The notes under the pieces are model-generated. The model was not told the DNA's origin. It did not search any database and saw only the letters and a list, made by a program, of their open reading frames with translations. The translations under genes were made by a program, and so were the position numbers. Below, in pieces: positions 13,766 through 64,000 of a stretch of 64,000 bases of DNA. The stretch lies in NCBI RefSeq assembly GCF_963921235.1, contig NC_086109.1, forward strand, positions 12,958,001 through 13,022,000, given 5' to 3'. Every line of letters begins with the position of its first letter. Position 1 is the stretch's first letter. The DNA comes from Mobula hypostoma. Taxonomy: Eukaryota.

Positions 13766-14479
13766 ATGAGAAACAAGTGTTACTCAAGATCTAAATAACT
13801 TGAAAATCATAAAAAGGGAATCAGTTCTCAGAGCTAAACAGACTGTGTTCAGTCCTCCCAGGGCAGACTATTCCACATCCCATCCCTGTTTCATGGATCA
13901 GTCATCCCGTCCCTTATTCTGTGCTCTTTTTATCTGTCCCCATCAATGTGCTCCAATACTCCACCCCCCAGCACCCACTGACCATCCATTTCCCGGCAGC
14001 CAGACTCTCCATCGGACCGATCCCTGGTGGGAAATAGGGCAATGGAATTAGAGAGAACTTGGGACACAGTCCAGCACAAGAATGGACTCCATGACCCACC
14101 ATGTCTGCTCTGACCATGAAGTGATTCTAAGCTAATTCATGTGGTCCAGATCCCTCCAAACCCTCTCTTTTCATGTCCATGTCCGAAAGCACCTTATTGT
14201 CTCTGTTTCCACCAGCTGGTCTGACTGTGCATTCCACGCAGTCACCACCCGCAGTGTAAAACAAAACTTGTCTCGCAAACATCCTTTAAACTTTCCCACG
14301 ATCACCCTCAAACTATTATTATTAATACCATTATTTAATATTTCAACCCTGGAAAAAAGATTCCAATTATCTTCCCTATCTATGCCTTCTATAACATTTT
14401 AGACTTGTCACAGATCTCTCCAACACTCCAGCAAAAACAATCTGAGTTTGTCCAACTTCTGCCCACAGCTAATACACTC

Positions 14480-14780
14480 CAATCCAGGCAATATTTATTC
14501 CTATATTTATAGATTGATTTAAATTGAGCTACAGCAGAGAATAGGCACTTCCGGCCCTTCGAGCTATGCCATCCTAGATTTAACCCTATCCTAATCACTA
14601 GACAATTTTCAATGACCAATTAACCAATCAACCCATTGGTCTTTGGACAATGGGATGAAGCTGGAGCACCTGGAGGAAACCCACATGGTCACAGGGAGAC
14701 TGTACAAACTTCTTACAGACAGCGGTGGGAATTGAAACTTGGTCACTGGTACGGTTCACTACTAATTTACTGCGCCACCC
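14480..14780 (-). mobile_element. HE1/V-SINE-like tRNA-derived SINE (decayed)
   Basis: The reverse complement contains a GGTGCTCCAGCTTCATCCCATTGTCCAAAGAC-type central V domain. Borders approximate. Confidence 0.6.
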
Positions 14781-15064
14781 TGGTGAGATCATGGTTAACC
14801 TCTTTACACTCTCCAAAACCTCCACATCTTGAATAATGTGTTGCAACCAGAACTACATATTATGTTGCAAATGTGCCCTAACCAAAGTTTTTTCAAGCAC
14901 AAAGATGCCTTGTCAGCTTCAGTCTCCAACATGTAGAATGAAGAATGCAAACGTGCTGAATGCTTTCATTACCATTATGTCCACTTGTGTTGCCACTTTC
15001 ACGGAGCAATGGACTTGAACCCCAAGAACTCTCAGTACATCAATTCTAAAGGGATCCCAATATT

Positions 15065-16520
15065 AAATTCCAGGTGACATCAAACTTCACTAATGTATGA
15101 GGAGTGTTTGAAGGCTCTGCGCCTGTACTTGCTGGAGTTTAGAAGAATGAGGGAGGATCACATGGAAAGCTATCAAGTGTTGAAAAGCCCAGTGCGTACA
15201 GAGAGGATGTTTCCGATAGTGTGGATGTCTAGGACCAGAGAGCACAGACTCAGAATAGAAGGATGCAGCTTTAAAGAGGGATGAAGCTGGTGAATTTGTG
15301 GTAGCTGTGGACACCAATTCATTGGGGATATTTAAAGCAGGGGTTAATAGGGTCTTGATCAGTAAGGGTGTCAAAGATTACAGAAAGAAGACAGGAGAAT
15401 AGATTGAGAGGGATAAGAAATCAACCATGATGGAATGGTAGAGAAGACTCAATGGACTGCATCACTTAATTCTACTCCTATGTTCTATGGTCTTGTGGTC
15501 CATGGTCTTTCTGCTTCTCCAGTCTCACATGCGTCCTTGTTAGCTTCATATAGATATCATTACTAATGGGATCCCTTCCCCATGTCAAAAACATTGCTGA
15601 CTAGTCCTAATCATATTATGCTTCTCCAAATCTTCATAAATCCTGCCTTTCAGGATCTTCTCCATCAGCTTACTAACCACTGAAGTAAGACTAACTGGTC
15701 TATAATTTCCTAGGCTATCTCTACTCCCTTTCTTGAATAATGGAACAACATCCACAACCCTCCAATCCTCTTGAACCTCTCCCATCCCCATTGAAGATGC
15801 AAAGATCATTGCCAGAGGATCAGCAATCTCTTTTCTCACCTCCCACAGTAGCCTGGGGTATATCTTGTCCAGTCCCGGTGACTTATCCAACTTGATGCTT
15901 TCCGAAAGCACCAGCACATCCTCTTTCTTAATATCTATATGCTCAAGCTTGTATGACTGACAGCAGAGAAAACTGAGAGGAACCTATTGACACAAAGAAG
16001 GAAGATATGAACACCACCAAAGGCAGAGGACCTTCATTGCTGCCCTAAACACCAGTAGTGTAATGGGCAGTAAGTAAGTAGGTATGGAGTCTCAGAATAA
16101 CCTAAGATGTGAGACATTTAAGACTGGGATTAGGAAGGATTTGTTCTCCCAGAAAGTGGTGAACCTGTATTCAAGAAGCATTTAGTTATTTTTTTCAGAG
16201 GCAGGGAGATCAAGAGGAATGAGAAACAATTATTCTCCCAGAAATTAGGGTCCATTGAAAGGCAGAAAGTAGATAATCACCAATAATGGAGGAACGGTGA
16301 TGGAAAACTGATGTGATTGAAAACCAATAAACCTCCAAGTTCTGATACTCTGCATCCCAGAGAACATAAGGAATTGTCACAAGAAATAGTTGATACATTG
16401 CTGGCCGTTTGTAATTCCAATGGATTGAAGAAAAGCTAACAACTAATTTTAAAAGAGATAGAGACAAAAGCGGAAATTATAGAGCAATTAGCCTGACATT
16501 GGTATAAGGAAATGTGGTAA
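15065..16520. mobile_element. Cluster of decayed CR1 fragments in both orientations
   Basis: ORF 15093-15284 (+, RT C-terminus LYLLEFRRMR) and 15585-15917 (-, KSPGLDKIYP, NYRPVSLTSVV). Confidence 0.75.
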
Positions 16521-17379
16521 AGAAGGACCAAGGACAAAACCAATGTATTGAATTGGTCTTTTGTTTCTTTGTGCCCAGTATAAATTCCTCCATTTCTGTC
16601 TGTTAGATATCCTGTCTTTGTTTTAATTAATCTTCTCTTCACAAACTGATTGTAGTTATAGAGGTGCTCAGAAGGTGTGGCCATGTCTTCCACTTGCTAT
16701 GTATGATGGCCACGTATGAAAATGGGAACAAGTTTTGGCACAGACTAGAAGGGCCAAATGGCCTGTTTTCTGTGTTGTAGTGCTCTATGGTTCTAGGTAT
16801 GTATGTTCCCTGCAAACTTGCTCATGTTCTTTATTTTCAGTGTTTTAATAGGCTACTTTATATTATCTTGAATTCTAAACTATTTTGAGTACTCAGCTTA
16901 TCTGCTTTGTCTGAACATGACACGTTTTCTTGGATCTTATAGATTCACAAATTTCTTTCGAGAGTTGTACTTGATAATGTAAAAGCTTCTGAGGGGATCT
17001 CTTTAATGCATGAAATATTCCCTGAGGGATGGATGGAGTTCATGTTAAAAGGGACATTTCACAGGGTCTAGAATGTTGACAATTCCAGGAGAATATTGAT
17101 CATCATCTCATTCCTGTACTTAAGTCTATTACTCTGTGCAGTTTGAACAGATGTTTCAAAAATGGAAAGCTTTATTCAAATATCTGAGTGCTCACTGGAG
17201 GTGTAGGAACTCTCCCACCAGGAAGAGAATCAGGGAAATTATATGCATAGAAAGTTGTTGCCAGGATTTTATGACAGCTTCTGAGAATGGCTGAGGTTTC
17301 TGTCAGTAGTGCAAATGCAAAAAGCCAGTCCTGAGTAAGAGGAAGTAAATGAGTGAACAACATAAAAGTGAGACATTTT

Positions 17380-17650
17380 TTAAAAATTTCATTTATTTAG
17401 CAGTACACCACCACGTAGGCACCTCCAGGCATTTGAGCCACACTGGCCCCCAAACCCCGCCAATCATGATTAACCCTAACCTAATCGCGGGACAATTTAC
17501 AACAACAAGAGGATCCGGAGAAAATCTATGCATTCCACAGGGAGGATGTACAGAAACCCCTTACAGAATGGCTGTGGAACTAAACTCTGAACTCCAGAGC
17601 ACCCTGAGCTGTAATAGTGTCGCTCTAACTGCTACGCTACGGTGTCGCCC
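17380..17650 (-). mobile_element. HE1/V-SINE-like SINE
   Basis: The reverse complement begins GGCGACACCGTAGCGTAGCAGTTAGAGCG (tRNA A-box-like head) and ends in an A/T-rich tail. Confidence 0.75.
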
Positions 17651-18386
17651 ACTGTATATTGAATTTCTGTATATTGTTTAAAAAAGACCTTGCCTTTTTA
17701 TTGGGAAAACCTCCTGCAGTATCCTGTTGGATAGAAAGTGTCTGTGAGCCATTATCCCCCTGTATACTCAAGTACAGTCATGACCACATCTCTGCAGAGG
17801 GTGATGGAGCCCCAGAAAGAGATCTCCTCCTGCTGGCAGAGGCCAGCTCCCTGGCAGGACATTTCCCTTACGATTTCACACATTTAAATAGGATTATAGT
17901 TTCCTCAGTACTAGACCTTTCACTTCCCCAACAGCATCTCCACACCACCAGTTCCTGAATACAGAAAAGAATCCAAATTGTCAGTATATGTAATGGGGTG
18001 CACAGGAGAACAGCAATTAGTGTAACACTATTACAGCACCAGCCATCAGTTCTACCCATGACTGTGTGGGTTTCCTTCCACTTTCCAAAGATACATGGGT
18101 TAGTATTGGTAAGCTATAGCCAAGCCATTTTGGTGCTGGAAGCATGGAATACTTGCAGGCTGCCCCCAGCACATATTCCATGTTGGACGTTGCTGTAAAC
18201 GATGCTTTTCACTATGTGCTCTGATGTACATGTGACAAAAATTCTCATCTTTAATCTTTAAATGTGCATTGAGTAACAGATCACCTTTGGTCTACCATGC
18301 CCAAGTACCTATTGGTCTAACAATTGTGAGCTCTTGTTCTTGTAAGTGCAAAGCAGATGAAATTGAATTTTATTTTCTTTTAACAG

Positions 18387-18441
18387 GGCCAATTCATTTC
18401 TCTGAAAATACTGAGACAGAATCGATGACAACTGCACAAAG
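18387..18441 (+). CDS. Locus A stalk exon (GPIHFSENTETESMTTAQ)
   Basis: TTTTCTTTTAACAG acceptor and AG|GTAAGA donor. Open only in the phase-1 entry frame, Ser/Thr/Glu-rich, exits in phase 2 like the gene B stalk exon. Confidence 0.72.
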
Positions 18442-21400
18442 GTAAGAAACTATTTCTCCTCAAACGTAAGGGATAAGGTTCTCTCTACAGGTGGTTTCAC
18501 TGCTACTGCTTCCAGGCAGAGCAAGTTGGGAGAGAAATTTGGTGTTAAACACATTTGACATAAATAACTTCAATGAGCTCATGTCATGAAAATTGAGTAT
18601 TCCTGATTTTGTTGTATATGTGTCAAGTCTGAGATCACAGATAAATTTATTTCCCCAAATATTTAATAATTTAAGCACTGCAGCTGAAGCTCGTGTATAG
18701 AGTCATACAATCATTGTTATATATTAGAACAAAAGGCCCTTCATCCTGACTCATCCAAACCAACCAAAATGTTCATCTAAGCTCGGCACATTTAATTTTA
18801 TTTATCCTATATCCAGGGCTTCCCCACCTGGAGTCAAGTCCAGTCAAGTCAAGTTTATTGTCATTTAACTATATACATATTTACCATCAAATGAGACAAT
18901 GTTTCTCCTAACCAGCGTGTAAAGAACTGTAATATGCATAATGCATAATAACTTATGAAAGTGAGAATGAAATCTACACATAAATAAACAAACTAAAGTG
19001 CATAAATTAAGTTCTGTAAGGTACACAGCAGACTAACCAGTGACACTGACTCTATGGACCCCTCAGATATTGGTAGGGGCCCATGCATAAAAAAGTTTGT
19101 GAACCCCTATTCGAAGCCTTTCCTATCCACATGTCTGTCAAAATGTCTTTTGAACTTTGTAAATGTATCCACTGCTATAGATTGCTATGGCACCTTGTTC
19201 CATGTACTCAAGACCCTTTGTGAACAAGTTGCTCATCGGGTCCTTTCTCCACTCACTTTAAGTCTGCACATACTCACTTTACTGTTCCCTCCCCTTGTAA
19301 AAAGACAATGAGCATTCACCTTATCGATGCCCCTCATGATTTTATGTACCTCTGTTAAGTCACCCCTCAGCATTCTAATCAAGGGCAAACATCTCAGCCT
19401 ATCCAATCCTACATTATAACTCTAGCCCTCCATTTTCAGGAATATCCTCATGACATTTTTGCTGCACCATTTCCAGACTAATGATATCTTTACTATACCC
19501 AGGAGACCACAACTGCACTCACTAACATCTTGTACAGCCATAACATAACATAATAAACTTATACTCACTGCCCTGACTGACAAAGTAAGTGTATCAAATG
19601 CCACCCTGTCTACCTGTGTCACCACTTTCAGGCAACAATGTACCTGGAAACCTAGATCTTTTTTTTACAATACTCTCCATAGCATTCTCCTACCATTTAC
19701 TGTGTATGTCTTGCCCTGGTTTAACTTACCAAAATGCAAAACCTCCAACTTGAAAAACCCCATCACAATCCACTAACTCCTCCCACCAGGCCAATGTTAT
19801 ATTTAATTAGCTAGCTCACCCTGCATCCCACGTTGATCCAAATCTCTGGAGTTATCTCCATGTGGGTCCTTGTTAAAGGCCTTACTAAGGTTCATGTAGA
19901 CAACATCCACTACCCTGCCCTCATTAATCCTCTCTGTCTGTAATGAGCACTTTTGGCCTATGCAAGGAGCCAGAGAGCATTGAGCTCCAAAGTTTTTAAG
20001 AGCACCTGAATTATTTAATTGTAGTTTAAAAAGAGTTGTTAATCCTTTAGAGAGCCTTGGGTCTTTCTTGAATGACTCGCTCTTTGTAATATGGACCCTG
20101 GTGCTTTCTGTTTAAGCTTATTAAATTTATTTCAGTAAGCTCAGGAATTCCATGTTACTTGTATTACTTAAACAGACACCTGATTTGCACTAATCACAGG
20201 GTCCTATTTGAGAGTGTTCAGTCTGGTAGGTGCCAGTCAGCCAAGCCACCAATGTTCTGTTGGAATAAACTTTGGTGTCTGTCTCCACAATGGAGTTTGG
20301 CTTTCCTGCGCAATTGGGTTCCAACATTGCCGATGTACATCGTGACACTGTCACCTCTTCAAAAAGCTCATTCATATTCGTGAGAACTGATTTCCGATGC
20401 TGACTATCCTAATCAGCCTTGCTTATCCAATTGCTGGTAGATTCTCTTCCTCAGAATCTCCTCCAGTAATTTTCCTACCACTGATGTTGGTTTCATTGGC
20501 CTGCAGCTTCCTGGTGTGCCTTTGTACCCCTTTTTAAATAAAGCCACAGCATCTGCTATTGATCACCCAGACTTCTGTTACCTCATTTGTGGTAAAAATG
20601 ATGCAAGTATCACTATGAAGACCTTAGTCATTTATCCCTAGCTTTTCATACTACCCAGGGCTACAGTTGCTCAGGCCCTATGAAATTATCCAAAAACGTT
20701 ATTCTTCAAGACTGTCAGCAAGTCCTCATTTTAATGATAATATGTTCCAACAGAACACTATTCATTTCCCTTAATTCCTCATCTTCCATGACCAGCTTCA
20801 CAGTAAATACAGATGAGAAATATTAATTTAAGACCTCACCAGTCTCCTGTAGCTCAACATATGGATGATCATATTAATCATTATGGGAACCCATTCACTT
20901 CCTCGTTGCTCTTTTCCTTTTAATAGACTTATAAATCTCTCAGAATTCTTTTATCTTATCTCATTGAGTTATCTCATATCCTCTTTTTGCTTTTCTGATC
21001 TCCCTTCTAATTGCATATTTACAGTGATGCTAGACGTTTGTGAACGTTTCGCTCTAATATTGGATTATTTTTTCTCAATAAATCAATAAACAAGTATAAT
21101 GATATTTTGTGTCATTTATTTAGATTCTCTTCATCAAGTTTTAGGACTGATGTGAAGATCTGATCACATTTTAGGTCACATTTATGCAGAAATAAGAGAA
21201 AATTCTAAAGGGTTCACAAACTTCCTAGCACCTTTTATATTCCTTAAGGGATTCCAATGATCCCAGCTGCCTATACCTGTTAAATGCCTTGTTTTTCCTG
21301 ACCAGTATCTCAACACCCTTGTCAACCAGGATTTCCTAATTCTGCCTGTCTTGCACTTCACTCTAACAGGAACGTGCCATCCTTGAACTCGCCTGATCTG

Positions 21401-22899
21401 CAGCTCATCGGAATGGAAATGGCGTCATGTTTACATCACACTACTGTGTTATGTCTGTGGTGAGGAAACTAGAATAAATTCCTCCATTTGCCATGATTCA
21501 GAGGGTACTCCCTGTGGTGTTTACTATGACAGTCCCATGACTAACTCTATCCCAAGACATAAGTTGAATTGCAATGCTTCTTTACCACTGGCGCCACAGC
21601 AGAGAAAGTCACAGCAAGGCAAATTTCCTGGTGAACTACAGGCTGAGGGCATCACACTTCGAGTTATTTCTCTAAGTGCTGGCCATTGTAACAGCAGGAG
21701 ACATCTCATCTATAATGTGCCTTTGGAGGAGCTCATGTGATGTCAAACTGCTTGCCTTGAGATGTTCACTGTAGGTCTTCTGCTGGGTCTGTTGAAGATG
21801 TTCCACAGTCCAGAGGAGAAAAGATTTTGACATGAGGCCAGTAAGATCTCAACAATCAACGTCCAAGCCAATGTGGGATTTGGTGGGAGTTGCTTTTGTA
21901 GGAGAGCTGGTTTTAAGCGGATGCGGTGTTTCCTTTATTAGATCCTTCAACTGTGAGTGCAGTGGGATCTGTAGATATTACCTCAGCTTCTCCCCACATC
22001 CTGATTCTTACACACAAGTGTTCATACATATATAATTATACTTTTTGGATATTTGCAATAATTCATATTTTTATTTGATTTTTCATTACTTTTCACTGAC
22101 CTGGTAATTAAAGACCCAAATTTCACTGACATACTCTCTTCCTCTCCCCTCTTGCTGGGCAGCAAATACAAAAGCTAGAAAGCATGTACCACCAGGCTCT
22201 AGGATAGCTTCTATCCCAGTTATAAAACTGTTCGATGGCCTCAATGTTTTCATGGCAATTTCATGGCCTGACATGTTCTGCTGCTCTTCACCCGAACCTT
22301 GTGATTTTAACACCCAGCAAGGGCAGTTTCTCCACTAAGTATGGCTTCTGCATGCTTGAACCAAATATTTTGTTCATGCAGCAGAAACTTGAGAAAGTTC
22401 TTCAGCAATTACTGTAGTACTGAGGTTAAAGGCACATGTATTTATTATCGAAGTATTTATTCAGTAAACAACTCTGAGATTTATCTTCTTCAGAAAGCCA
22501 CGAAACAAAGAAAACCATGAGGGCCGTTCAAAGAAGAGGTTCAGCTACATGATCAGCAACGCTGTCTGTCAGAGAAGAAACCACCAATCAATCCTTTAAT
22601 GTAACAGTTTTAATGACATGTTTGTAAAAGAACATGGTAGGGATCTCAAATGACCTGGATAATAGTTACTCTTTAATCAACATCACACTCATTGGTCATG
22701 ATCACATTTCTACTTGTGAGACCTTGGAGTGAACAGATTGGCTGTTGCAAATTCCCACACGGTGAACAGTGTCTAATATTCATTTTATGAGCTGCAGGCA
22801 TCCTGAGCTCATGAAAAATGCTGTGTAAATGTCAGACTTTACAAATGGCCAAGAATAAGTGGTGAACCAAGGTTAATGCATTCCCATTCTTTATCACAG

Positions 22900-22983
22900 A
22901 ATTACTTACATAATTTTGCTCAGTGTCATTGGAATTCTTCTCAGTCGTTTGTCTAGTTTGCCACCTGAAGAGAAAAAACAGTG
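22900..22983 (+). CDS. Locus A transmembrane exon, frameshifted
   Basis: TTCCCATTCTTTATCACAG acceptor and GTAGGT donor. Phase-2 entry gives ITYIILLSVIGILL; the hydrophobic stretch and basic stop-transfer continue in another frame (VVCLVCHLKRKNS). Confidence 0.7.
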
Positions 22984-23253
22984 GTAGGTTTCTTTTCTCC
23001 TTTAAATGTTTCATGATGAATATGATAGCTAGCTTCTGAATCTTAAGGAACTTGATTTTGAAACAATCAATGAAAAGCTGGGATGTGCATTCGTACTGAT
23101 GTTTAGATATAGAACACATGAATGAATTGATCAGGTGTATCTTTTACCAATCTACCACTCACTGCATATCACTGGAGAAATTTCCCTACTCTCATTGTAC
23201 AAAGTTGTTGTAAATTAAGTCATGGGTCTGCTTTATTGAGATGATCCTGAGAT

Positions 23254-23567
23254 GGGCACCACAGTGGCGTAGAGGTTAGAGTGAAGCAATTACAATTCGG
23301 GGCATTTTGGAGTTCGGAGTTCAATTCCGGTGCCATTCTGTAAGGAGTCTGTACATCCTCCCTGTGGAATGCGTGGGTTTTCCCCGGGTGCTCTGGTTTC
23401 CTTCCACAGTCCAAAGACATTCTGAAGTGGTTAATTAGTCGTTGTAATTTGTCCCGTGATTAGGTTGGGGCTAATCAGGTTTGTTGAGGTTTGCTGGGTC
23501 AGCATGGCTGGAAGGGCCGGAAGGGCTGACCCTGCAATGCCCCACTAAATAAACAAACAAACAAATA
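23254..23567 (+). mobile_element. HE1/V-SINE-like SINE
   Basis: GGGCACCACAGTGGCGTAGAGGTTAG head, GGGTGCTCTGGTTTCCTTCCACAGTCCAAAGAC V core, (AAAC)n tail. Confidence 0.82.
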
Positions 23568-24372
23568 ACCTTGCTCTCTTAAATAAATCAGTGAAGAGAA
23601 CTGTGAGTACAGTGATCTCCTGTAGGTTATTATTAGACAGGGAAATGGGGTTGATCTTTGGAAAATAAAGTCCCTCCAAATGATTGGCCAATGGAATATA
23701 ACTCATTGGCTGAAAATTATGATTTTAATTTTCTCTGAGTCCCTGTTTGTTGCAAAGATCTGAACAAAAGGAGTGCATTCTTTTTCATAGAGAAATTCTC
23801 TAAATGATCAGTACTTGAGATAAAGGCAGAAAAGTGCTAACAACACTCAGCATGTAAGATGGCAGCTGTGGAGAGAGGAACAGCTAATCCTTCAAGGCAA
23901 TGACCTTACATCAAAACTGGAAAATGTGAGCGATAACAAGTCTTGAGGTGCAGAGAAAGTATGGAAGGAAGCACAAAAGAGAGGGTTTCTGACAGAGTAC
24001 AAGACAGAAAAAAATACATCAGAAAAGCTGACGTGTGGGCCGGCTGGACAGTTGGAAAATGAGGTGATTTTTATTTTGGGCAGTTTGTTCCTTCTGCCTG
24101 AGGGACAATCCAGAGTTTATCCCGTGATTAGTTCTTGATTGGATGCAGCATCAAAGGTTACGTGAGGAGGCTGGGAAATGGGGTTGAGGAGGGGACAAAA
24201 GGATCAGCCATGAATGAATGGTGGAGCAGACTCGATGGGCCAAATGGCCTAATTCTGCTCCTATTTCTTATGGTCTTTCTGAATATTGTGCAATAACCAG
24301 AGCAGAGGTTTGCTCTGCGTGGAGAATCATTACTGTGTTGCAGCCTGGGTTCCATGGTTCTGAGATTCAGTA

Positions 24373-24670
24373 TGGGGGTCATGGTAATGTAACAGTTTGC
24401 GCGAAGCTAGCTGTTCAATTCCAGTGCCGTTCTGAAAGGAGTCTCTGTATGTCCTCCCTGTGGGATGCGTGGATACACTCCGGGTCCTCCAGTTTCCTCC
24501 CAGAGTCCAAAGACGTACCAGGTAGGTGAATTGGTCAATGGAAATTGTCCCGTGATTAGGTTAGGGTTAATCTGGTTTGTCGGGGGTTACTGGGGTGGCG
24601 AAACTCAAAGGGCTGCAAGGGCCGACTCTGTGCTGTATCTATCTATCTATCTATCAATAAATAAATAAAT
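24373..24670 (+). mobile_element. HE1/V-SINE-like SINE
   Basis: V core CCGGGTCCTCCAGTTTCCTCCCAGAGTCCAAAGAC; (TATC)n(AAAT)n tail. Confidence 0.75.
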
Positions 24671-24723
24671 GTTTATGTCTGTTCCTGACATGGAATTTTT
24701 TTCAATAATATTGTATTTTCCAG

Positions 24724-24769
24724 AATGGAGCCCAAAACATCTCACAGAGAAGGCAACAATGACACCCAG
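24724..24769 (+). CDS. Locus A cytoplasmic exon 1 (MEPKTSHREGNNDTQ)
   Basis: TTGTATTTTCCAG acceptor and CAG|GTATGG donor; 46 nt. Phase 2 in and phase 0 out places the next exon in the ITIM frame. Confidence 0.65.
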
Positions 24770-25216
24770 GTATGGACATGGAGTATAAATTCTCTAATGC
24801 CTCAGAATGTTTAAAATTTGGATTTCATTGGAGTTTACAGATCATTCATCCCCAGTAGTCCAGTCCAGTATTAATATTTTACAAAAACTTCTGAACACTC
24901 CTCTCATTGAATCCCATCAGCATATCCTTCTAGTTAACTGTCCCTTTCTCTTGTGTTTATCCAGCTTTTCTTTAAGTGTATCTATAATATTTTATGTGAC
25001 TATTCTTGAAAGTGGCTCCAGTCTTTATTATCATTACCGAATGGTGAAAAGTGAGATTGGTCCTTTCTCTACTGTTAGAGATGGAGCATCTAATTGTGTA
25101 AATCTGTCTTTGGGTTCAATGACTTTTCAGTTTACATTTTGTATATTCCCTCTGAATCTCAAACTCTGATGTGAAATCAGAAAAAAATAGGGCAGGTCTA
25201 ATCAGAACAATTAATT

Positions 25217-25465
25217 GGGGATGGCACGGTAGCGTAGCGGTTAGCGTTACGTTATTACAGCGCCAGTGACCTGGGTTCAGTTCCACTCCTGTTTGTAAGG
25301 AGTTTGTATGTTCTCCCAGTGACTGAGTAGATCTCCTTTGGGTGCTCCGATTTCCTCCCACGTTCCAAAGAGGTTAGTAGGTTAATTTGGTCATATCGGT
25401 TTAATTGGGTAGTACGGGTTTATTGGGCCAGAATGGCCTGTTTCTATGCTGTATCTCTAAATAAG
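25217..25465 (+). mobile_element. HE1/V-SINE-like SINE with CR1-like 3' tail
   Basis: GGCACGGTAGCGTAGCGGTTAGC head, GGGTGCTCCGATTTCCTCCCACGTTCCAAAGA core. The tail GGGCCAGAATGGCCTGTTTCT matches the CR1 3' ends in this window. Confidence 0.85.
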
Positions 25466-26403
25466 TAAATATCTGTTCTGCGCTTACCTCACCCACCCAT
25501 TTTCTCACCCTACCCCTCAATTCTGACACCAGTATGAATAGTCTATTGACTCTTAGGTCTGTTATTAACAATCCTTGTTTGTGATATTTTCCACAATTTT
25601 CAACATGCGTGGTAAATGCAGGTTGGAAATTGTTCAAGGAACCTGCTCCCTTATGGGCATCATGTTCTCTCCAAGAGCTGTACCTTCAGAGAACTGTGTG
25701 TTCCTCTTGTGCATCCTCCACTCTCAGAATCCCACTACCAATGGCAGTCGCTTCAGCTGTCCAAATCCCACACACTGGACTCAACTCCATGAACTCCTGC
25801 AATTCTGTCCTCTTAACTTTTGATCGTTAAAGATGCAGCAGAGTAACAGTCCTCCTGGCCCACGAGCCTAATTCTCATTTATTTTCAACCTCTTCTCTTA
25901 CTGAACCCCTGTGAAACACCTAGGACCAGTTTAGTGTGTTGGTGTCGTAAAGCAACATGCTGTTCTTGTACATTTAGTAGCGGGTCCTCACTAAGGATCA
26001 CTGCTACTGAGTCATAAGCTGTTATCAAATATTCTGGAAAATTATAATTTACAAGCTGATTGAAAGGATCAAGGTTTATTTAAAGAGTGAAATCTGAGGG
26101 TGATCTGTTAGACGTCTGCGAGACTATCCGATTGTTTTATAGAGTAGTGAAGGTGCTTCCACATACAGATGAGAATAGAACTCAAGCTATAAACATAAGA
26201 TGGATACTTTTAAAAATCCAGGAACTTAAGACCATAAAACCATAAGGCGCAGAAGCAGAATTAGGCTTTAGGCTCATCAAGACTGCTCTGCCCCTCAATC
26301 ATGGCTGATTTGTTTATCTTTTCATCTCATGTTCCTGCCTTTTCCCTGTAACCTTTCACATCCATCAGTCATAGATACATTGTGAATTTATTCTTTATTT
26401 CAG

Positions 26404-26590
26404 GAAATGGCCACGTTGGAAGAAAATATCATTTATACAGATCTACACCATGTTCAAAACGCTGAGGCAGCTGCCCAATTGGCTAACAATGAAAATTGAA
26501 TTGTGTATGCAGATGTGAAATATAAAAGGTAATCAAGAGCAGTACACTCCGTTACTGATGAGGACAACGTTATCGATGCAGATATCAAAA
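26404..26590 (+). CDS. Locus A terminal exon with three tandem ITIM-like repeats, truncated by stops
   Basis: TTCTTTATTTCAG acceptor. Reads EMATLEENIIYTDLHH...ENEN-type repeat then TGA(26497) IVYADVKYKR TAA(26530) SRAVHSVTDEDNVIDADIK. IIYTDL and IVYADV fit (I/V/L/S)xYxx(L/V). Confidence 0.85.
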
Positions 26591-26723
26591 CCAACCCGCA
26601 AACCCCTAACAGAAAGCTTTCTTTCCCGGTACTGCACAGGAAACTTGTGTTGATTTTTAGGGAAATTGCTTACTTCAATCTACATTGTTTATTTCTCCAT
26701 CCTTGACTTATTGTTGTATTATA

Positions 26724-44141: not shown

Positions 44142-44178
44142 ATGTGGACTTTGATTCTTCTGATTGGTCTCCTACCCG
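44142..44178 (+). CDS. Gene B leader exon (MWTLILLIGLLP)
   Basis: ATG in GCAATGT context, a hydrophobic 12-mer, and a G|GTGAGT donor in phase 1. Joined to V1 it gives the signal peptide MWTLILLIGLLPVSGA. Confidence 0.85.
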
Positions 44179-44269
44179 GTGAGTGACAAGCACTGGACAT
44201 TTGCATAATCAGTGTTGGTTTGGGGGTCGTACACCATTTCCACAACAACGCTTGAATACCCGTCGACAC

Positions 44270-44760
44270 TAAAGATGTCAGAAACTGGAATTCAGAGTAC
44301 ACTCCTGGAGGAACTCAGCAGGTTAAGCAGCATCTGTCAGGGGGAGGGGGAAATGTCAACGGTTCAGGTCAAGACCCTTCATCAAGTGTGAGTGGAGAGG
44401 GAGATAGTGTAAATAGGAGAGGGACAGGTGTGAGACTGGGACTGCTAGGTGGCTGGGGACTGAGGAGAGGTGAAACACGACAGGCAAATAGAATGGAGAG
44501 GAAAAGTGGTGAAGTTTGGAGGTATGTGAGAGGTGGAAGCAGATAAGGAGAAAAGGAGAACAGTGTGGAGTCAGGTGCGGGGAGAATATATCCAGCTGGA
44601 GAAATCTCCTAGAAGCTTTTAAGCAGGAACATCAGATTTATCATTGCTGGAATCTGATCTCACTCTGTAGGATCACTATGGCAATTGATGTTATTCTCTC
44701 GAAATCAGTGGTTTTCCTGGGCCATTTCATTGGGGCAATTGGTAAAGAACATTGCTAGAT
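44270..44760. repeat. Interspersed repeat with ACTCAGCAGGT...AGACCCTTCATCA motif (possibly Penelope-like derived); related copies at about 34066-34200 and 58785-58900
   Basis: The same motif recurs three times in the window. The family assignment is from memory only. Confidence 0.4.
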
Positions 44761-45438
44761 CTGGAATCAAAGACAAACCAGGGTGGGTAGGGATCAGAGA
44801 TTTCTGTCCCAAAAGGCCCTTCCGATCCAGATGGGACTTTAACAATCTGGTATTTGATCATTAACTCATTGATATGCAGTTTTTAATTCCAGAAATAATT
44901 AATAAATTGCATTTAAGCACCAAATGTATCTTTACAGAAACTGAAGTCACACCTGGATTTCTAGACACCAAAGGGTAACGACCACTGTTGCACCACCTTC
45001 TAACTACACATAGAAATATTTGACAGGTACAAAATATAAAATTTGCATCAGAACCAGATGGCACAGAAGGCACAGTTTCAGACATCATGAGGGGTTTCTT
45101 TCTGCGGTTTATGAGCTTGTCTGTGAGTGAGGAGGAACTCAGGATGTTGGTCTCATGGTGAGAATTGAAACATAACCTCAAATGATCCTGCTGAGGCCCA
45201 TCTCAACCCCAGAGTTCCACAGAATCTGAGACACACCCACAAATCTGGGAGCATCCCAAATGAATTAGCTGTCATTTTTGTCTACATTTGACGGCACTTC
45301 AGATCAAAACTGTTGGCTGTGCTATCCTGGTCCATCCACGTGCTGGACATGACCTAGACCTGTTTTTACTGTAGTGTTCAAAGTTATTTGTTTGCATTAA
45401 GTTCTTCCTTTCCTCAAATCCGAAAATATCTTCTTCAG

Positions 45439-45759
45439 TTTCAGGTGCATTGTGGGCGGAGGAAAATGTAAGAGGAGTTGTGGGAAGAGCGATCACAATC
45501 GATTGTCACTATGAAGCAAAGTACCGCTCACACACAAAGTATTGGTGCCGTAGATGGAAACACCAATGTTCAGTTTTAGTGGAAACAAATGGGCAACATG
45601 GACGGAGTGGACGTGTGTCAATCACAGATAACCCGGAACAGAGAATATTTACTGTTACTATGGAGGACCTTCACTCTGAAGATAAAGGACGGTACATCTG
45701 TGGAATTGCACCACTAAGTATTGATAAAGGATTTATTGTAGATCTACAAGTCTCTGATG
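45439..45759 (+). CDS. Gene B V1 exon, CD300/pIgR/TREM-like Ig V domain
   Basis: TTCTTCAG acceptor, GTAGGT donor, 321 nt, phase 1-1. Contains TIDCHY, KYWCRRWKHQC and EDKGRYICG. Confidence 0.95.
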
Positions 45760-46124
45760 GTAGGTTTCTCAGTGATCGACTTTGTGCCTTCAATAATGTA
45801 AATGTCTCACCCATGTTTCCTCTGGTCAGTACATTAGATGTCCTGGGGAGTGACGAAGTGCTGGATCTTCAGTTACTGTTTTTGAATGGAGAAATGCCCA
45901 TCTCATGAATGTGTCTGAAAAACAGCAAAATCCTCCTCCTGTTCAGCCTCAGCACAGATTACAATATTTTCGTCCAGACTCTGTCCATCCCTCACCATCT
46001 CTGCATTAATATCAGTGTCAAATGTTTCCCTCTCTACAGCAGGTCACTGAACCCAGTCACAACTTCATTTTCCCCTGAAAGTCAGCAAGCATGTGCAGGA
46101 TATCTCACAAGTTGCTACCTTTAA

Positions 46125-47945
46125 AAACTTAGTGGTCACTTTATTAGGTTCCGCTTGCTGTTTGCCGCTGTAGCCAATCCACTTCAAAGTCTGATGTGTT
46201 GTGCATTCAAAGATGCTCTTCTGCTCACCACTGTTGTAAAATGCATGTTTATTTGAATTTCTGCCACCTTTCAGTAAGCTTGAACCAGTCTGGTCATTCT
46301 TCTCTGATCTCTCTCAATAACAAGGCATTTTTGCTCACAAATTGCTGCTCACTGGATATTTTTTGTTTATTTTTCACCATTCTCTGTAAACTCTAGAGAC
46401 AGTTGTGTGTGAAAATCCCAGGAGATCAGCAGTTTCTGAGACACTCAAACCACCCCTTCAGGCACCAATAATCATTCCATGGTCAAAGTCATTTAGATCA
46501 CATTTCTGTCCCCCATTCTGATGTTTGGCTTGAACAACTGAATCTCTTCCTCTTCTTCTTTTGACTTTTAATGGCAGTTAGTCCAACTTAAACGTGCATT
46601 ACCACCACCAAAAGGACTGAAGTGTGGTGTGGAGAATTAGGAAGTAAAAACCTTACTACTACTTTTCAAATGAAAGCTAATTAACCCCAAAGGTCGTATA
46701 GATTGTAAGTAGTGAAAGGTAATACTGAGAATTATAGTCACTCACATAACATCGTAAATTTTCAAATGAAAACTATCAACCCCCAAAAATTGTAATAAAC
46801 CTGCATTTTATTTCTTTCAACCATATACAGTATGCTTCACTTTGTAATATGTTCAACTGTTTCATAATGATGCCAAGAAAGCCGGCGGCTGACATCACTC
46901 AGGCACTCTCTCTTAAAAATGACAGTCCATGGCAAGATAAACCTAGAGGTTCATCACAACCTACATAACCCAGAATGATGTTTTCCAGCAAGATACAAGG
47001 AATAATTATGCATAGTATGCCAAATTCTAAGTCTAGTCAATATAATTCCTTCCTTTCTTGAATTACCCACTTCTCACACAAACCCAGCAGTTTTATGTAT
47101 TCTGTAAAGGTGTATCCTCTTATGCTCATTATCCCACAAGTCTTGTCATAAGCACCTAATTCTTAACCCTTCCAACCCCTTAGCTTCTGATTTTCTGAGT
47201 GGAAGGTCTATGTCCACAGTTGAATTTTTAACAGCTTTTTTAGCTAAACAATCAATGCTCTCACTCCCCTCAACACCTCTATGTGCAGAGACCCATAAGG
47301 AAAGGACGTGTAAACCAATACTTTGAATATGAAATAAAGTTTGATGAGCTTCCAACGGTAAATCTGACTTACTGCTAGAATAACCTGTTTAAGACTCATC
47401 AAAACCGAAAAGGAATCTGAACAAATTACTATTTTGCAAGGTCAAATTTCCTCCAACCACTCTGAGCCCAAAATGATGACATCCAATCCTGTTGTATATA
47501 ATGATAAATACTTTATAAGACATTTCTTGTTCGTTACCTGTAATTCAGGCATATAAACAGCCACACCAACATTCCCAGTTAAAATATATTTTGATCCATC
47601 TGTAAAAATGGTTAACATATCAGCATCATTTTCCATAATATACTGATGGACCTACAGACTTTCAGACATAACAGAATCCTTAGACTTTATTAAATCATGT
47701 AACCTAAAATCAGCTAAAGTCAGTGGGGAAAAAAAAACCAAAGAGGGGTTACCAAGAAAGCTACAATGGGACATATTGCATAACCTTACAAAGCCATATT
47801 CCTCACATGATAAGAACCCAGCCACCCAAAACTAAAAACACTGTTCTTGTGATGTTTCCAACAATCCTCCAACACACCTTTAACAGAATGATTATTTCTT
47901 AACTGAACCTCTTGACCATGTCTGCATGCTTTTATGGACTGAGCA
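46125..47945. mobile_element. Tc1-type MITE (same family as 26724) interrupted by an RNase H-bearing LINE
   Basis: Left terminus CTTAGTGGTCACTTTATTAGG; MITE sequence resumes at 47901 after the insertion. Confidence 0.65.
46549..47900 (-). mobile_element. I-group (Nimb-like) LINE 3' part with RNase H
   Basis: IFTDGSK (47442-47636) and WVSAHRGVEGSESIDCLAK (47146-47355); (GAA)n 3' tail. A 13-bp TSD AACTGAA[T/C]CTCTT lies at 46536-46548 and 47901-47913. Confidence 0.8.
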
Positions 47946-48619
47946 TAAAATATTCTCAGGTGTCCATGTGGATATTCTTGGGAAGTTACATGAAAATCTT
48001 TGTTGACCCTTTATATTTGTTCAATTAGATCTGCTCTTGATGATCTTTGTGTGGCTTATAGATTAGCTTCATCTTCAACTTTAAAATGTTTGGATGTGAT
48101 AGAAGTACAGGCTTTAAGGTTAAATTGTGGTGCAATAAGGTTACTGCTTTTTTGGTTGAAATGGAACAATCACCCTTACAATTGCAGAGGTTGATGCTGC
48201 TGATAGCCTACTGGATTAAATTGAAGGGGCAAAGAAATGATAATCCTTTTAGAGGTATGCTGGAAGACTTTTGAGAACATCACAAGATTTAGTTTGGGTG
48301 GCTGGGTACTTATCACTCTAGGAATATGGGTTTGTTGAATAATGCAATATGTCCCACTGCACCTTACTCTGTAATCCCATCTTGGTTTTTTCCATTGAAT
48401 TTAGTTAATTTCAGGCTACATGATTTAATAAAGTCTAAGAACTGTCTTATGCCTGACAGTCTGTTGGTTCATCAATATATTAAGGAAAATTATTATGATA
48501 TGTCAACCATTTTTACGGATGGATCAAAAGATAATTTAACTGGGGATGTTGGTCTGGCTCTTTTTGTGCCTACATTGTAGGTAACAATAAATAAATATCT
48601 TACTAATGACTTAACAGTT

Positions 48620-48930
48620 ATATGGGCATCCGTTAGTCTCATGAGACCATGGATTTGCGCTTTGAAAGATTTCCAGGGCGCGGCTCTGGGCAGGGTTGAA
48701 TGGAAGACTGGCAGTTGCCTATGCTGCAAGTCTCCCCTCTCCATGCCACCGATGTTGTCCAAGGGAAGGGCATTAGGACCCATACAGCTTGGCACCGGTG
48801 TCATCACAGAGCAATGTGTGGTTAAGTGCTTTGCTCAAGGACACAACACACTGCCTCAGCCAAGGCTCGAACTAGCGACCTTCAGATAACTAGACCAATG
48901 CCTTAACCACTTGACCACATGCCAACACGT
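48620..48930 (-). mobile_element. tRNA-derived SINE with CORE-like domain
   Basis: Reverse complement: TGGTCAAGTGGTTAAGGCA (A box), GTTCGAGCC (B box), then TGTGTCCTTGAGCAAAGCACTTAACC. Confidence 0.65.
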
Positions 48931-49001
48931 ACGTACAGTAAAATTGTTTGCCATCATTTTGGAAAGAAATTATATTGACTTGACTTAAAATTAGGCATAC
49001 T

Positions 49002-60288: not shown

Positions 60289-61193
60289 TATATAAATTCT
60301 ATCTTCCAGAACATATGCCGAAGCCTTCTATGGAGAGGTGAAATAAGATCTCACTCAGACACTTCACAAACACTGACTGTGACTCAGGTACATGGTTCCC
60401 TGAAAGTGGAGTCAGGGGTAGACAGAGTAGTGAAGAAGGCTTTAGGCATCAGCCAGAGTAGACAAGTTGGAAGGTGATGTTGCAGTTGTTTGAGACAATT
60501 GATGAGATGATACTTGGAGTATTATGTTCAGTTTTGGTTCTCTGCTGAAGAAGAGATGTTAATAAACTGGATGAATTGAAGAAAAGATTTCAAATTTCAA
60601 AGTCCATTTATTATCCAAGTATATATATATCACCATACACAACCCTGGGATTCATTTTCATGCGGGCATACTCAGTAAATACAATAACCATAATAGAATC
60701 AATGAATGACCGCAATGCAAGATGTTGCCATTGTCTTGAAACTATTTGATATTATTCCTACATGGTTCCATCTTTTTGATCATCATAATTGCATTTTATT
60801 GTGGTCATTTTCATTGCCCTGATTGATTTACCCCATTCTTTCCCCAATTTACAAAGTCTCTTATTGGCATTTCAGACCTTCTGTTGTGAGTGAGTCCTAC
60901 AGAAATTTTTGAATGTAATTTCCCTATATCTACTGTTGTCCAGAGAATAATGTGATCAGATTTTTGATGATATTTCAGTATCATGGAGGCCACTCATTAT
61001 TAACTTCTCTATCATTCCTAAACCCATTTTCACTTTGCAGTTTCTAATTCAAAGATCTAATTTGTCCGAGACCAAGCCCCAGTGATTAGGTCTGTATCTG
61101 ATAATCATCAGTTGCCTACCACACCCTCAGTTAACATTAGTTTACTCTTCCAGATGAACCGCTCTAGCTCTGGTTATTTGCCTTGCTCCACTC

Positions 61194-61845
61194 TGTCCAG
61201 TGGCAGGCGTGGTTTATTCTGATTGTTGAAAGTCGCTTCCTTTGTGATTGGTTAATTCAGTAAGCAGCTCATTAGCTATCACACTCTGGGGTGGTGCTGG
61301 TGGCCTTTTGGGGCACAGGGAGGCTGGTGGACTACTGTCGTGTACTGGGGGATGACTATTGTATTGTACTGCGTTTTGTATGTAACTTAATAGGGAATTC
61401 ACAAAGGTAATCCTCATCGTCACAAGGGTTGGATCGCAGGGTGTTGCAACTTTCAAGAGGTAGTGTGTCCTGTGGGGGGCTTATTCTGATTGTCAAAAGT
61501 CGCTTTCATCCTGATTAGTTAGTTTAGCAACTGCAGCTGCTTTTCCCATTGGTTAGCGGCCTGGTGTCCAGTGTCAAATATCCTGGGTATAAAAGAGCAC
61601 ATGGAAGAGGCTTGCTCTCTTTTCCTTGGTTTAAGGCAAGTGGTGCACATAACCATCGGGAAGGTATGCATTGCATGCGCTTTTAGCTAAGTGTGTTTGT
61701 AGATTCAACTTTGTAGTTTCTGTAACTTGGGAACATGAATATTTGGTAGAATTTTTATTGTTGGTAAAAAATGATTGACATATTTATTTGCAGCCAGTGT
61801 TTTCTGTCTCACTTGCCACACCCACGATCCTGATTCAACGTTACA
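61194..61845 (+). mobile_element. Probable solo LTR (652 bp) with TATA box
   Basis: TGT...ACA termini with flanks CACTC and GACTC (5-bp TSD, one mismatch). An internal direct repeat of about 55 bp (61221 and 61478), ATTGG boxes and TATAAAA at 61588-61594. Confidence 0.6.
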
Positions 61846-61936
61846 GACTCCACAAAGGAAACAGGAGGTACATATTTTAAACACAAAGCCATCTCATTTC
61901 ATCTCATCAATTCTGTATCTCTTCCTCTTTGCTCAG

Positions 61937-62027
61937 TTTCATGATATGGGAAGTGGGTTGTTGGGTACTCTTCGCTCTCCTGATGATCGGCACGAGTTCA
62001 GTCATGTGGTTCACAAGAGAAACTAAG
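61937..62027 (+). CDS. Gene B transmembrane exon (FMIWEVGCWVLFALLMIGTSSVMWFTRETK)
   Basis: CTCTTCCTCTTTGCTCAG acceptor and AAG|GTAGGC donor; 91 nt. Phase 2 in and phase 0 out matches both neighbours; hydrophobic stretch followed by R/K. Confidence 0.82.
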
Positions 62028-62282
62028 GTAGGCTAATGGACATTAGTGGAATTTGCTTCCAAATATACTTTTCATTTGAGGAAAGACATTTAAACACATT
62101 TACCTTTCCTTATCCAATGGTCAATCCAAAGCTATCTGCAGATGATATTGTCAAGATGTTAACACACTGTATGTGTGCAGAATGTTTGATGTGAATATAT
62201 TGGAGTCCAAGCTCCAGATACAACTCTAAAGCAGAGTTCCCAATGTCGATGAGTCTGATGATTTGACCGTTGCCTTTTACAG

Positions 62283-62321
62283 AAACCTGATGAATCAGAT
62301 CTTCACAGACTGGTCTACGAG
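62283..62321 (+). CDS. Gene B cytoplasmic micro-exon (KPDESDLHRLVYE)
   Basis: CCTTTTACAG acceptor, GAG|GTAAAG donor, phase 0-0; paralog at 3-41. No convincing terminal exon was found before 64000, where the window ends in a pyrimidine tract. Confidence 0.75.
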
Positions 62322-64000
62322 GTAAAGTGAAGGCTCCTGGATCACACAGATTGTGCTGGAATTTTACACAAAGATCAAATATTCATTCTTCTTCCCACTT
62401 TGTGCAGCTTTATCATTTGTGGAGAATTAACCTCTCATCTTACAATTGTTAACTTCATGAAGGTGAAAAAATGTTACCATACTTCAAGACAGTAACTTTT
62501 GTTTTATCATTCTATTTCTAACATGTCACTCTCACTGGTCTCAATCATATGGCACCTTTTCACAATGTTTTTTTTTCGTTGCACAAGCACCAATTTTTAA
62601 CCCTACCATCGCTGTGAACTGCTTAAGACCATTTTACTCTATCAAATGCTGTTCTATGGATTCAAATGCCTGAGGTTGTTGTACGTTTCAATAACTAATA
62701 AATAATCAATTAATATTCTTATAATAAATTGCTGATGTTAATAAGTAATTTATCCTCTCGGTTTAGTTGAGAATGAAATTTCATAAATGGTGAACACATC
62801 ACATTCAAGTTCCTGGATTTTCTTGATGGAATCAAGACCATAAGACCATAAACACAGGAGCAGGATAAGGCCATTTGGCCTGTAAAGTTTGCTTCGGCAT
62901 TCTATCATAGCTGATTTATTATCCTAGTGAACCCTATTCTTCTGTCTTCTCCCTGTAAGCTTTAATGCCCTCACTAATGAAGAACCTATCTACCTTCGCT
63001 TTAAATATACCCAGTGACTTAGTCTCCACAGCCATCCATGGTAATCAATTACACAGATTCACCACTCTCTGGCAAAGGATATTCCTCCTCATTTCTGTTC
63101 TAGAGGGAAGTCCCTCCATTATGAGACTGGCCTTTGGTCCTAGGCTCCTGTATTATTGGAAACTGTATTTAATATTACAGTTCTGTTTGAGTAATCTTGT
63201 GTGCCTGTGTGTATTTGTTTGATTAACCTTTTTTTGGTCATTTAAATAATAAATTATGAGTTACATGTATAAATATGAGCAAGCATGATGACGTATACAA
63301 TTCACATGATACATGCACGCCTCACTTGAAGTAAAGAATGAAGTTAGACCCACATTATTGAAGCACAGTGAAAGATTTGAAGTTAAAAAAATGCTGCAAG
63401 TTAAAAGAAATCATAGCCCAGCATGTGCAGAGATGGTCAAGTTTAATAAAAAAGCAGCACAGCACATGTTCTTCTGAAGGGAGGACACAATCAAGACTGA
63501 ACGGCTTAGGACCATTTTACTCTATTAAACCCTTTTCTATAGATTCAGATCCCTGAGGTTCTTGTTGTTGGATGTTCCAGTAACTAATAAATCAATTAAA
63601 ATTATTCTTTTTAAACTCTCATTGTAATTTTTTGTACTTTTTATAAGATATTAGTTGAATTAATGCAAGACCAAAATCATTGTTTTACTCGTAGTTTCTT
63701 TTTAACTGACATAATTTGTATTTGCAACAATTTGTATCTTTAACAAACTCATGTTTCACGGTATGTGGTGGTTCATCCCCACTTGCTGGCAGAAAGTGAT
63801 ATAGCAGTTACTTACTGGTTTATTATACCTTTTCATTTTTTAATTGGCTAAATGTTAGCACATAATACACATTATGATTGTGTAGCATTTTAATTCATTT
63901 ATCTTTATCTAAGGAATTTTTGTTATCTGGATTATAAAGATTTTTCAAAACTGCAATATTGAAGCTATGGAATATCTTTAATTTCTCGCCTCTCTTCTGC

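Follow-up and report, generated by a model that had tools for sequence, protein, structure and literature searches.

A probable MDIR family receptor gene in Mobula hypostoma that lacks the transmembrane arginine of its relatives

A 64,000-nucleotide stretch of the Mobula hypostoma genome (assembly GCF_963921235.1, contig NC_086109.1, positions 12,958,001 to 13,022,000 of the forward strand; hereafter the window) carries an eight-exon gene whose predicted product is a membrane receptor with four immunoglobulin (Ig) domains, alternately of V and C2 type. We consider it very likely, with a probability of roughly 0.85, that this locus is an intact chondrichthyan member of the modular domain immune-type receptor (MDIR) family, and that it belongs to the MDIR5-like, short-tail class. 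An initial annotation had singled out the V/C2 tandem as an unusual architecture, but clearnose-skate MDIR5 has an identical one. The window model aligns with MDIR5 at 59% identity, residues 1-501 to residues 1-501, and 28 of about 125 family proteins share the order V-C-V-C. Thus, the striking layout is a known MDIR layout and the claim of novelty falls; the window gene is a new member of a described family and not a new kind of receptor.

Exon structure and reading frame

The gene is real and its frame is intact. Pfam V-set scores for its two V domains (E values of 8e-14 for V1 and 6e-12 for V2) and end-to-end collinearity with proteins of six other species (residues 1-501) place it far beyond chance. 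A script that searched the 64-kb window for AG...GT exons of 321 nucleotides (nt), open in phase 1, returned exactly four, thereby recovering in place the four Ig exons of equal length and phase 1-1 that had been proposed from the sequence. Exons for the stalk, the transmembrane (TM) segment and the tail were placed by homology. The resulting model is as follows.

44142..44178, + strand: exon 1, leader, which covers the start codon and the greater part of the signal peptide (MWTLILLIGLLP); 37 nt, ends in phase 1
45439..45759, + strand: exon 2, V1, a V-set domain of the CD300/pIgR type that contains two disulfide pairs; 321 nt, phase 1-1
50832..51152, + strand: exon 3, C2a, a C2-set domain of the FCRL type, extended at its C-terminus (NCSY); 321 nt, phase 1-1
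54403..54723, + strand: exon 4, V2, a second CD300/pIgR-type V-set domain with a leader-like start, ISGALWAE; 321 nt, phase 1-1
56199..56519, + strand: exon 5, C2b, a second FCRL-type C2-set domain; 321 nt, phase 1-1
59124..59169, + strand: exon 6, stalk (GCGYSYEDIPVEPTA); 46 nt, AG/GT borders, open in phase 1
61937..62027, + strand: exon 7, transmembrane segment (FMIWEVGCWVLFALLMIGTSSVMWFTRETK); 91 nt, with tblastn matches to many family members
62283..62330, + strand: exon 8, short cytoplasmic tail (KPDESDLHRLVYEVK) and stop codon (TGA at 62328-62330)
62331..62642, + strand: probable 3' untranslated region; its sequence is also conserved at the start of the window

All 14 splice sites are canonical. 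Every acceptor has a polypyrimidine tract and every donor begins with GTA or GTG; each Ig exon in particular is preceded by such a tract and AG, and is followed by GTA or GTAAG. The leader ATG at 44142 has in-frame stops just upstream, its exon ends at a GTGAGT donor, and its peptide aligns with MDIR5 and the ray homologues at their N-termini. The TM exon has a strong acceptor and is up to 73% identical to family members in tblastn, and the stalk exon resembles the GREYSCETFTT stalk of homologues. A second 46-nt candidate for the stalk exon, at 61794-61839, was set aside because its donor is weak and it shows no similarity to homologue stalks. The structural cysteines of all four Ig domains are kept.

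The borders, phases and open frame of the eight-exon model given in the initial annotation stand, but its end point does not. Joined up to 62321, the exons comprise 1497 nt, or 499 stop-free codons; base 62321, however, is not part of a stop but the last base before GTAAAGTGA. Reading on to the TGA yields a 501-residue protein with the end ...LVYEVK. Seven full-length homologues end in ...LVYKVK or similar at exactly the same point, and therefore we take exon 8 to be terminal and read it through the GT at 62322, as does the alignment with Mobula P0005. We rejected splicing from 62321 to an additional exon that might complete an immunoreceptor tyrosine-based inhibitory motif (ITIM), given that homologues end two residues later within the same exon. 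The product is predicted to be a 501-residue type I membrane glycoprotein with a 15-residue signal peptide, four alternating V and C2 domains, a 15-residue stalk, one TM helix and a 20-residue tail.

Membership of the MDIR family

When family members were used as queries, clearnose-skate proteins with the UniRef names MDIR2, MDIR3 and MDIR5 were recovered at E values of 1e-106 to 1e-234. To obtain the domain orders of these and other homologues, V and C2 models derived from the window sequence were run against them. MDIR5 (UniRef A0S0F..., here P0203) has 501 residues and the order V-C-V-C, MDIR3 is V-V-C-V-C and MDIR2 is V-C, the last two with ITIM tails. The MDIR ectodomain is reportedly built from a few Ig domain subfamilies, combined one to six at a time, and the two V types and two C2 types found here, joined in variable number, match this modular description.

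Among about 125 family proteins from other chondrichthyans, the commonest orders are V-C (32 proteins), V-C-V-C (28) and V-C-V-C-V-C (16), and more than 20 different V/C orders occur. These modular proteins have 2-11 domains and are found in sharks, skates, rays, sawfish and a chimaera (Callorhinchus P0226, V-C-V-C with an ITIM tail), with many paralogues per species. The closest relatives are Hemitrygon, Hypanus and Mobula proteins, none of which exceeds 75% identity over the full length; an annotated protein of this genome itself was not found in the protein collection searched. Relatives carry the NCBI names “polymeric immunoglobulin receptor-like”, “Fc receptor-like protein 5” (FCRL5) or “uncharacterized”. 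One NCBI model from Rhinoraja longicauda (P0009) joins a TRIM69-like RING/B-box/PRY part to MDIR exons of the order C-V-C-stalk-TM; it is probably a merged prediction, and hints that TRIM genes neighbor the MDIR cluster in skates.

In domain trees, each domain of the window gene groups by position. V1 falls with first-position V domains of ray V-C-V-C proteins. The third-position V domains take in both V2 and a further V exon at 13 kb (support 0.97), and the C2 domains divide between the second-position (C2a, 0.93) and fourth-position (C2b, 0.96) C groups. It follows that the order of the four domains is an old feature and did not arise by a recent duplication inside the window gene.

These positional groups bear on whether the two V-C2 cassettes might be used alternatively, such that the main products would be two-domain proteins (leader-V1-C2a or leader-V2-C2b, each with stalk and TM segment). 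Because all Ig exons are in phase 1-1, any one of them can be skipped in frame, and the SGALWAE at the leader junction of V1 recurs where V2 begins; V-C, V-C-V and V-C-C proteins and many isoforms also exist in the family. Nonetheless, we think alternative cassettes unlikely. Each of the four domains falls into its own, old positional subfamily, no leader exon was found before V2, and 28 proteins of other species are V-C-V-C. The SGALWAE opening of the third domain is common to MDIR5 and every V-C-V-C homologue aligned, and is thus a family trait rather than the sign of a second leader. In addition, the UniRef record of skate MDIR5, which presumably derives from a cloned cDNA, gives the four-domain form.

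Membrane-proximal changes, RNA evidence and the gene cluster

The membrane-proximal module is where the window copy departs from its relatives. The TM helix starts with W-x-V-[GI]-R-W in all 35 homologues that have the same TM exon type, compared with W-E-V-G-C-W in the window. The window protein has Glu where 16 of these 35 have Lys, and the EYSCE stalk motif of the family has become GYSYE, with Tyr in place of the conserved Cys. The substitutions are C446Y, K461E and R464C. A motif scan of the 20-residue tail reveals neither an ITIM nor an immunoreceptor tyrosine-based activation motif (ITAM), compared with ITIM-like motifs in 60 of 77 long-tailed family proteins. Having no signaling motif and no basic TM residue, such as is expected of an activating partner coupled to an adaptor (e.g. 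FcR gamma or DAP12), the window copy falls into a class of MDIRs that has neither; relatives with ITIMs and relatives with a TM arginine both exist. Read in phase 0, the TM exon (61937-62026, + strand) encodes a hydrophilic peptide, FHDMGSGLLG...HKRN*, that is 57% identical to the C-terminus of a Pristis model (P0030). A stalk exon in another phase might give rise to it as part of a soluble isoform; alternatively, the Pristis gene may have been mispredicted.

By analogy with KIR, CD300 and TREM receptors, the MDIRs may form a paired inhibitory and activating system in which short-tail forms bearing the arginine are likely the adaptor-coupled partners. We propose that the short-tail class probably signals through an ITAM adaptor with an acidic TM segment, as do activating partners of ITIM receptors, because the arginine is invariant at the outer end of the helix, the stalk cysteine is usual, and other relatives have ITIM tails. 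With Cys for Arg, Glu for Lys and Tyr for the stalk Cys, the window copy is predicted not to couple to such an adaptor. It would then be a non-signaling or decoy surface receptor, or a copy beginning to decay. A copy without the otherwise invariant arginine provides a natural control on the coupling of short-tail MDIRs to adaptors through this residue.

RNA evidence comes from four runs labeled with the species, all small and of unspecified tissue. Low-depth contigs on V2, C2b and the TM exon have 7-18% mismatches and thus derive from paralogues. Contigs of approximately 93% identity end at 56520, the border of the C2b exon, and a 675-nt paralogue contig maps both to the C2b end, as far as 56520, and to 61935-62027; the 43 letters that separate the two blocks do not map, a number that becomes 46 after the exon borders are corrected. 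This gap is the size of the stalk exon, and therefore splicing of C2b to a 46-nt stalk and the TM exon is supported in a paralogue, not in the window gene. The exon joining put forward initially is consequently borne out for the C2b-stalk-TM pattern of a paralogue, but no exon-exon joint of this copy was seen in the read layouts, which did not extend to the leader-V1 and V1-C2a joints and show only paralogue contigs (82-93% identical). Introns at 52350-53520, 55450-55850, 57600-58200, 58600-59000 and 59400-59800 contain reverse-transcriptase fragments of the CR1 type of long interspersed nuclear element, and other repeats. The summed RNA-contig depth over the intronic repeats, from thousands to 100,000, drowns the gene's own signal in the read layouts.

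Several points count against an intact short-tail MDIR whose uncoupling follows from loss of the arginine. In the four RNA runs, no contig is at least 99% identical to any exon of this copy, and no indexed RNA run contains the V1 exon whole, which leaves expression of this copy and the joining of all eight exons as predictions. Only one assembly shows Cys in place of Arg, and polymorphism or error could explain the change. The adaptor role of the arginine in MDIRs is itself inferred by analogy, and the abstract of the 2006 MDIR study is said to describe MDIR5 as lacking typical signaling motifs.

The window gene sits in a tandem cluster that gains and loses copies. Three MDIR copies or remnants lie within the 64 kb, consistent with the multigene clusters of MDIRs. 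Positions 1-364 of the window are 84% identical to 62281-62642, which indicates that the genes are arranged head to tail; this segment (+ strand) has a terminal exon at 1-50 (KPDESAPPRLVYKVN*) followed by the probable 3' untranslated region of another short-tail MDIR paralogue, located upstream. The remaining copy spans 13147-26631 (+ strand) and retains an intact 321-nt V exon (13147-13467), but is clearly a pseudogene; no leader or C2 exon was found for it, and its other exons are disrupted.

18383-18466, + strand: pseudogene stalk exon with an in-frame stop
22904-22985, + strand: pseudogene TM exon with a frameshift
26401-26631, + strand: pseudogene ITIM exon with two in-frame stops

The protein encoded by the V exon of this pseudogene is 81% identical to V2. 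At the DNA level, the two third-position V exons (54405-54722 and 13149-13466) are 91.5% identical, compared with approximately 80% in the flanks (11861-13761 versus 53835-55009). The ratio of nonsynonymous to synonymous substitution rates for this pair (dN/dS) is 1.27, with dN of 0.095 and dS of 0.075; neutral drift of the pseudogene copy would account for this value, and so would diversification of the V domain.

A neighbor this clearly dead, within a cluster that sheds copies, raises the possibility that the window copy is likewise unexpressed or decaying, its frame still open but the residues of a working membrane-proximal module lost. C446Y, K461E and R464C strike the most conserved positions of the stalk and TM segment, and RNA contigs nearly identical to this copy are lacking. 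Conversely, all 501 codons are open, all splice sites are canonical with good polypyrimidine tracts, the structural cysteines of the Ig domains are kept, and absence from four small RNA runs is weak evidence. We therefore regard decay as possible but doubtful, and favor an intact MDIR gene. A count of private substitutions (20 at sites invariant in seven homologues) was dropped as a sign of relaxed constraint, because phylogeny confounds it; the skate outgroup has 27.

Domain affinities and comparison with known receptors

Homologues of PIGR and FcRL are absent from cartilaginous fishes according to two reviews, from 2014 and 2026 (PMC4016189 and PMC13337447). Every elasmobranch genome that we searched, however, contains many genes in which V domains related to pIgR and CD300 are fused in one protein to C2 domains related to FCRL5. 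The domain-level sequence matches and the fold of V1, linking V domains to pIgR/CD300 and C2 domains to FCRL5, thus contradict the reviews at the level of domains.

The assignment of the V domains to the CD300/pIgR type is confirmed. Among PDB sequences, V1 has its best match in pIgR, followed by CD300 proteins, and its AlphaFold model (predicted local distance difference test score, pLDDT, of 93) yields TM-scores of 0.93 to CD300lf and 0.87 to the first domain (D1) of pIgR. V2 is 57% identical to V1 in amino acid sequence.

For the C2 domains, sequence profiles likewise favor the FCRL type that had been suggested. Both exons have Pfam Ig_3/Ig_2 matches just under the cutoff, and C2a finds FCRL5 first among PDB sequences; C2b is 58% identical to C2a at the amino acid level. 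A profile of 50 family C2 domains scores 25-47 bits with each of the FCRL5 domains D4-D9 and 36 bits with FCRL4, ahead of titin, VSIG4, CAR and CD22. A profile from the two window exons alone scores 115-175 bits within the chondrichthyan group, and its best outsiders are mammalian FCRL5 domains at no more than 41 bits per domain. The AlphaFold model of C2a (pLDDT 92) has a generic C2-set fold, and a structure search with it returned generic C2-set neighbors (CD22, NTB-A, Fc gamma RI and FCRLA; Z 8-9) without singling out FCRL, for which reason the proposed FCRL link rests on the profiles. Beyond the canonical B-F pair, two more cysteines stand out in the family C2 alignment, one that is invariant, at position 60, and one that is nearly so, at position 97 within the NCSY extension; these two could form a second, family-specific disulfide.

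These affinities, set against the statements of the reviews, might suggest that the architecture of the window gene has not been described before and on its own connects the CD300/pIgR lineage with that of FCRL. We give this idea hardly any weight. Its novelty is refuted by the identical layout of MDIR5, MDIRs have been in the literature since 2006 (Cannon et al., Immunogenetics 58:362, as cited in passages of PMC3031540 and PMC2413239), and NCBI pipelines already call relatives pIgR-like or FCRL5.

A broader proposal concerns the family as a whole. The V-C2 unit occurs in sharks, rays, skates and a chimaera, and may therefore be the ancestral jawed-vertebrate arrangement, later split in bony vertebrates. 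There, separate genes would have retained the V part (the line of CD300, pIgR, FCMR and FCAMR) and the C2 part (that of FCRL). If true, MDIRs would be the missing cartilaginous-fish counterpart of both lines. We hold this proposal to be speculative and rather unlikely, together with the smaller one that the copy without arginine is a natural decoy receptor uncoupled from its adaptor. Similarity of MDIRs to CMRF-35/CD300, pIgR, TREM, NKp44 and FcR homologues was reportedly noted already in the 2006 study.

Compared with known receptors, the V domains share with CD300/CMRF-35 the same fold and an extra C-C' disulfide, at 37-38% identity to CD300lf. CD300 proteins, however, have a single V domain, whereas the window gene encodes four Ig domains, two of them C2. 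D1 of pIgR also has this fold and extra disulfide, and is 33% identical. Combined with the pIgR-like names that NCBI gives to relatives, this resemblance might point to a cartilaginous-fish functional counterpart of pIgR, a receptor that transcytoses polymeric Ig. Such a role seems very improbable for the window gene: pIgR has V-type domains only, never interleaved with C2 domains, and a long sorting and transcytosis tail in place of 20 residues. Moreover, V1 matches CD300lf slightly better than pIgR, and the gene belongs to a large set of fast-evolving paralogues rather than standing alone as a conserved gene.

FCRL5 D4-D9 share with MDIR C2 domains the motif series PVSxPVL...CE..GS.PI.Y...YYC.A.N..G..S, but reach at most 47 bits per C2 domain, against the much higher scores within the family. 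FCRLs are without V domains, whereas the window gene has two V-set domains and resembles FCRLs only in its C2 domains. The C2 exon of the MDIR family, unlike that of FCRL, also encodes an additional 15-residue extension with the nearly invariant Cys of NCSY.

Ray proteins from Hemitrygon akajei (P0190 and P0198), Hypanus sabinus (P0199) and Mobula birostris (P0173 and P0201), all called polymeric immunoglobulin receptor-like by NCBI, are 65-75% identical to the window protein from end to end, and share its V-C-V-C layout and the tail motif KPDES...LVYKVK. Unlike the window gene, all of them keep the TM Arg and Lys, and all except P0173 keep the EYSC stalk motif. P0198 and P0199 differ further from the window gene in having an extra stalk-like segment (RPVPFCENTAQRKKTT) between C2a and V2, which looks like the relic of a duplicated V-C2-stalk unit.

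Skate MDIR5, finally, matches the window protein in its 501-residue length, in the order leader-V-C2-V-C2-stalk-TM-short tail, in its TM exon type and EYSC-type stalk, and in the SGALWAE of its third domain. The two differ at the end of the tail (...SAHELQ in MDIR5, ...LVYEVK in the window gene) and at the membrane, where MDIR5 has WKVGRW and the stalk Cys, whereas the window gene has WEVGCW and Tyr.

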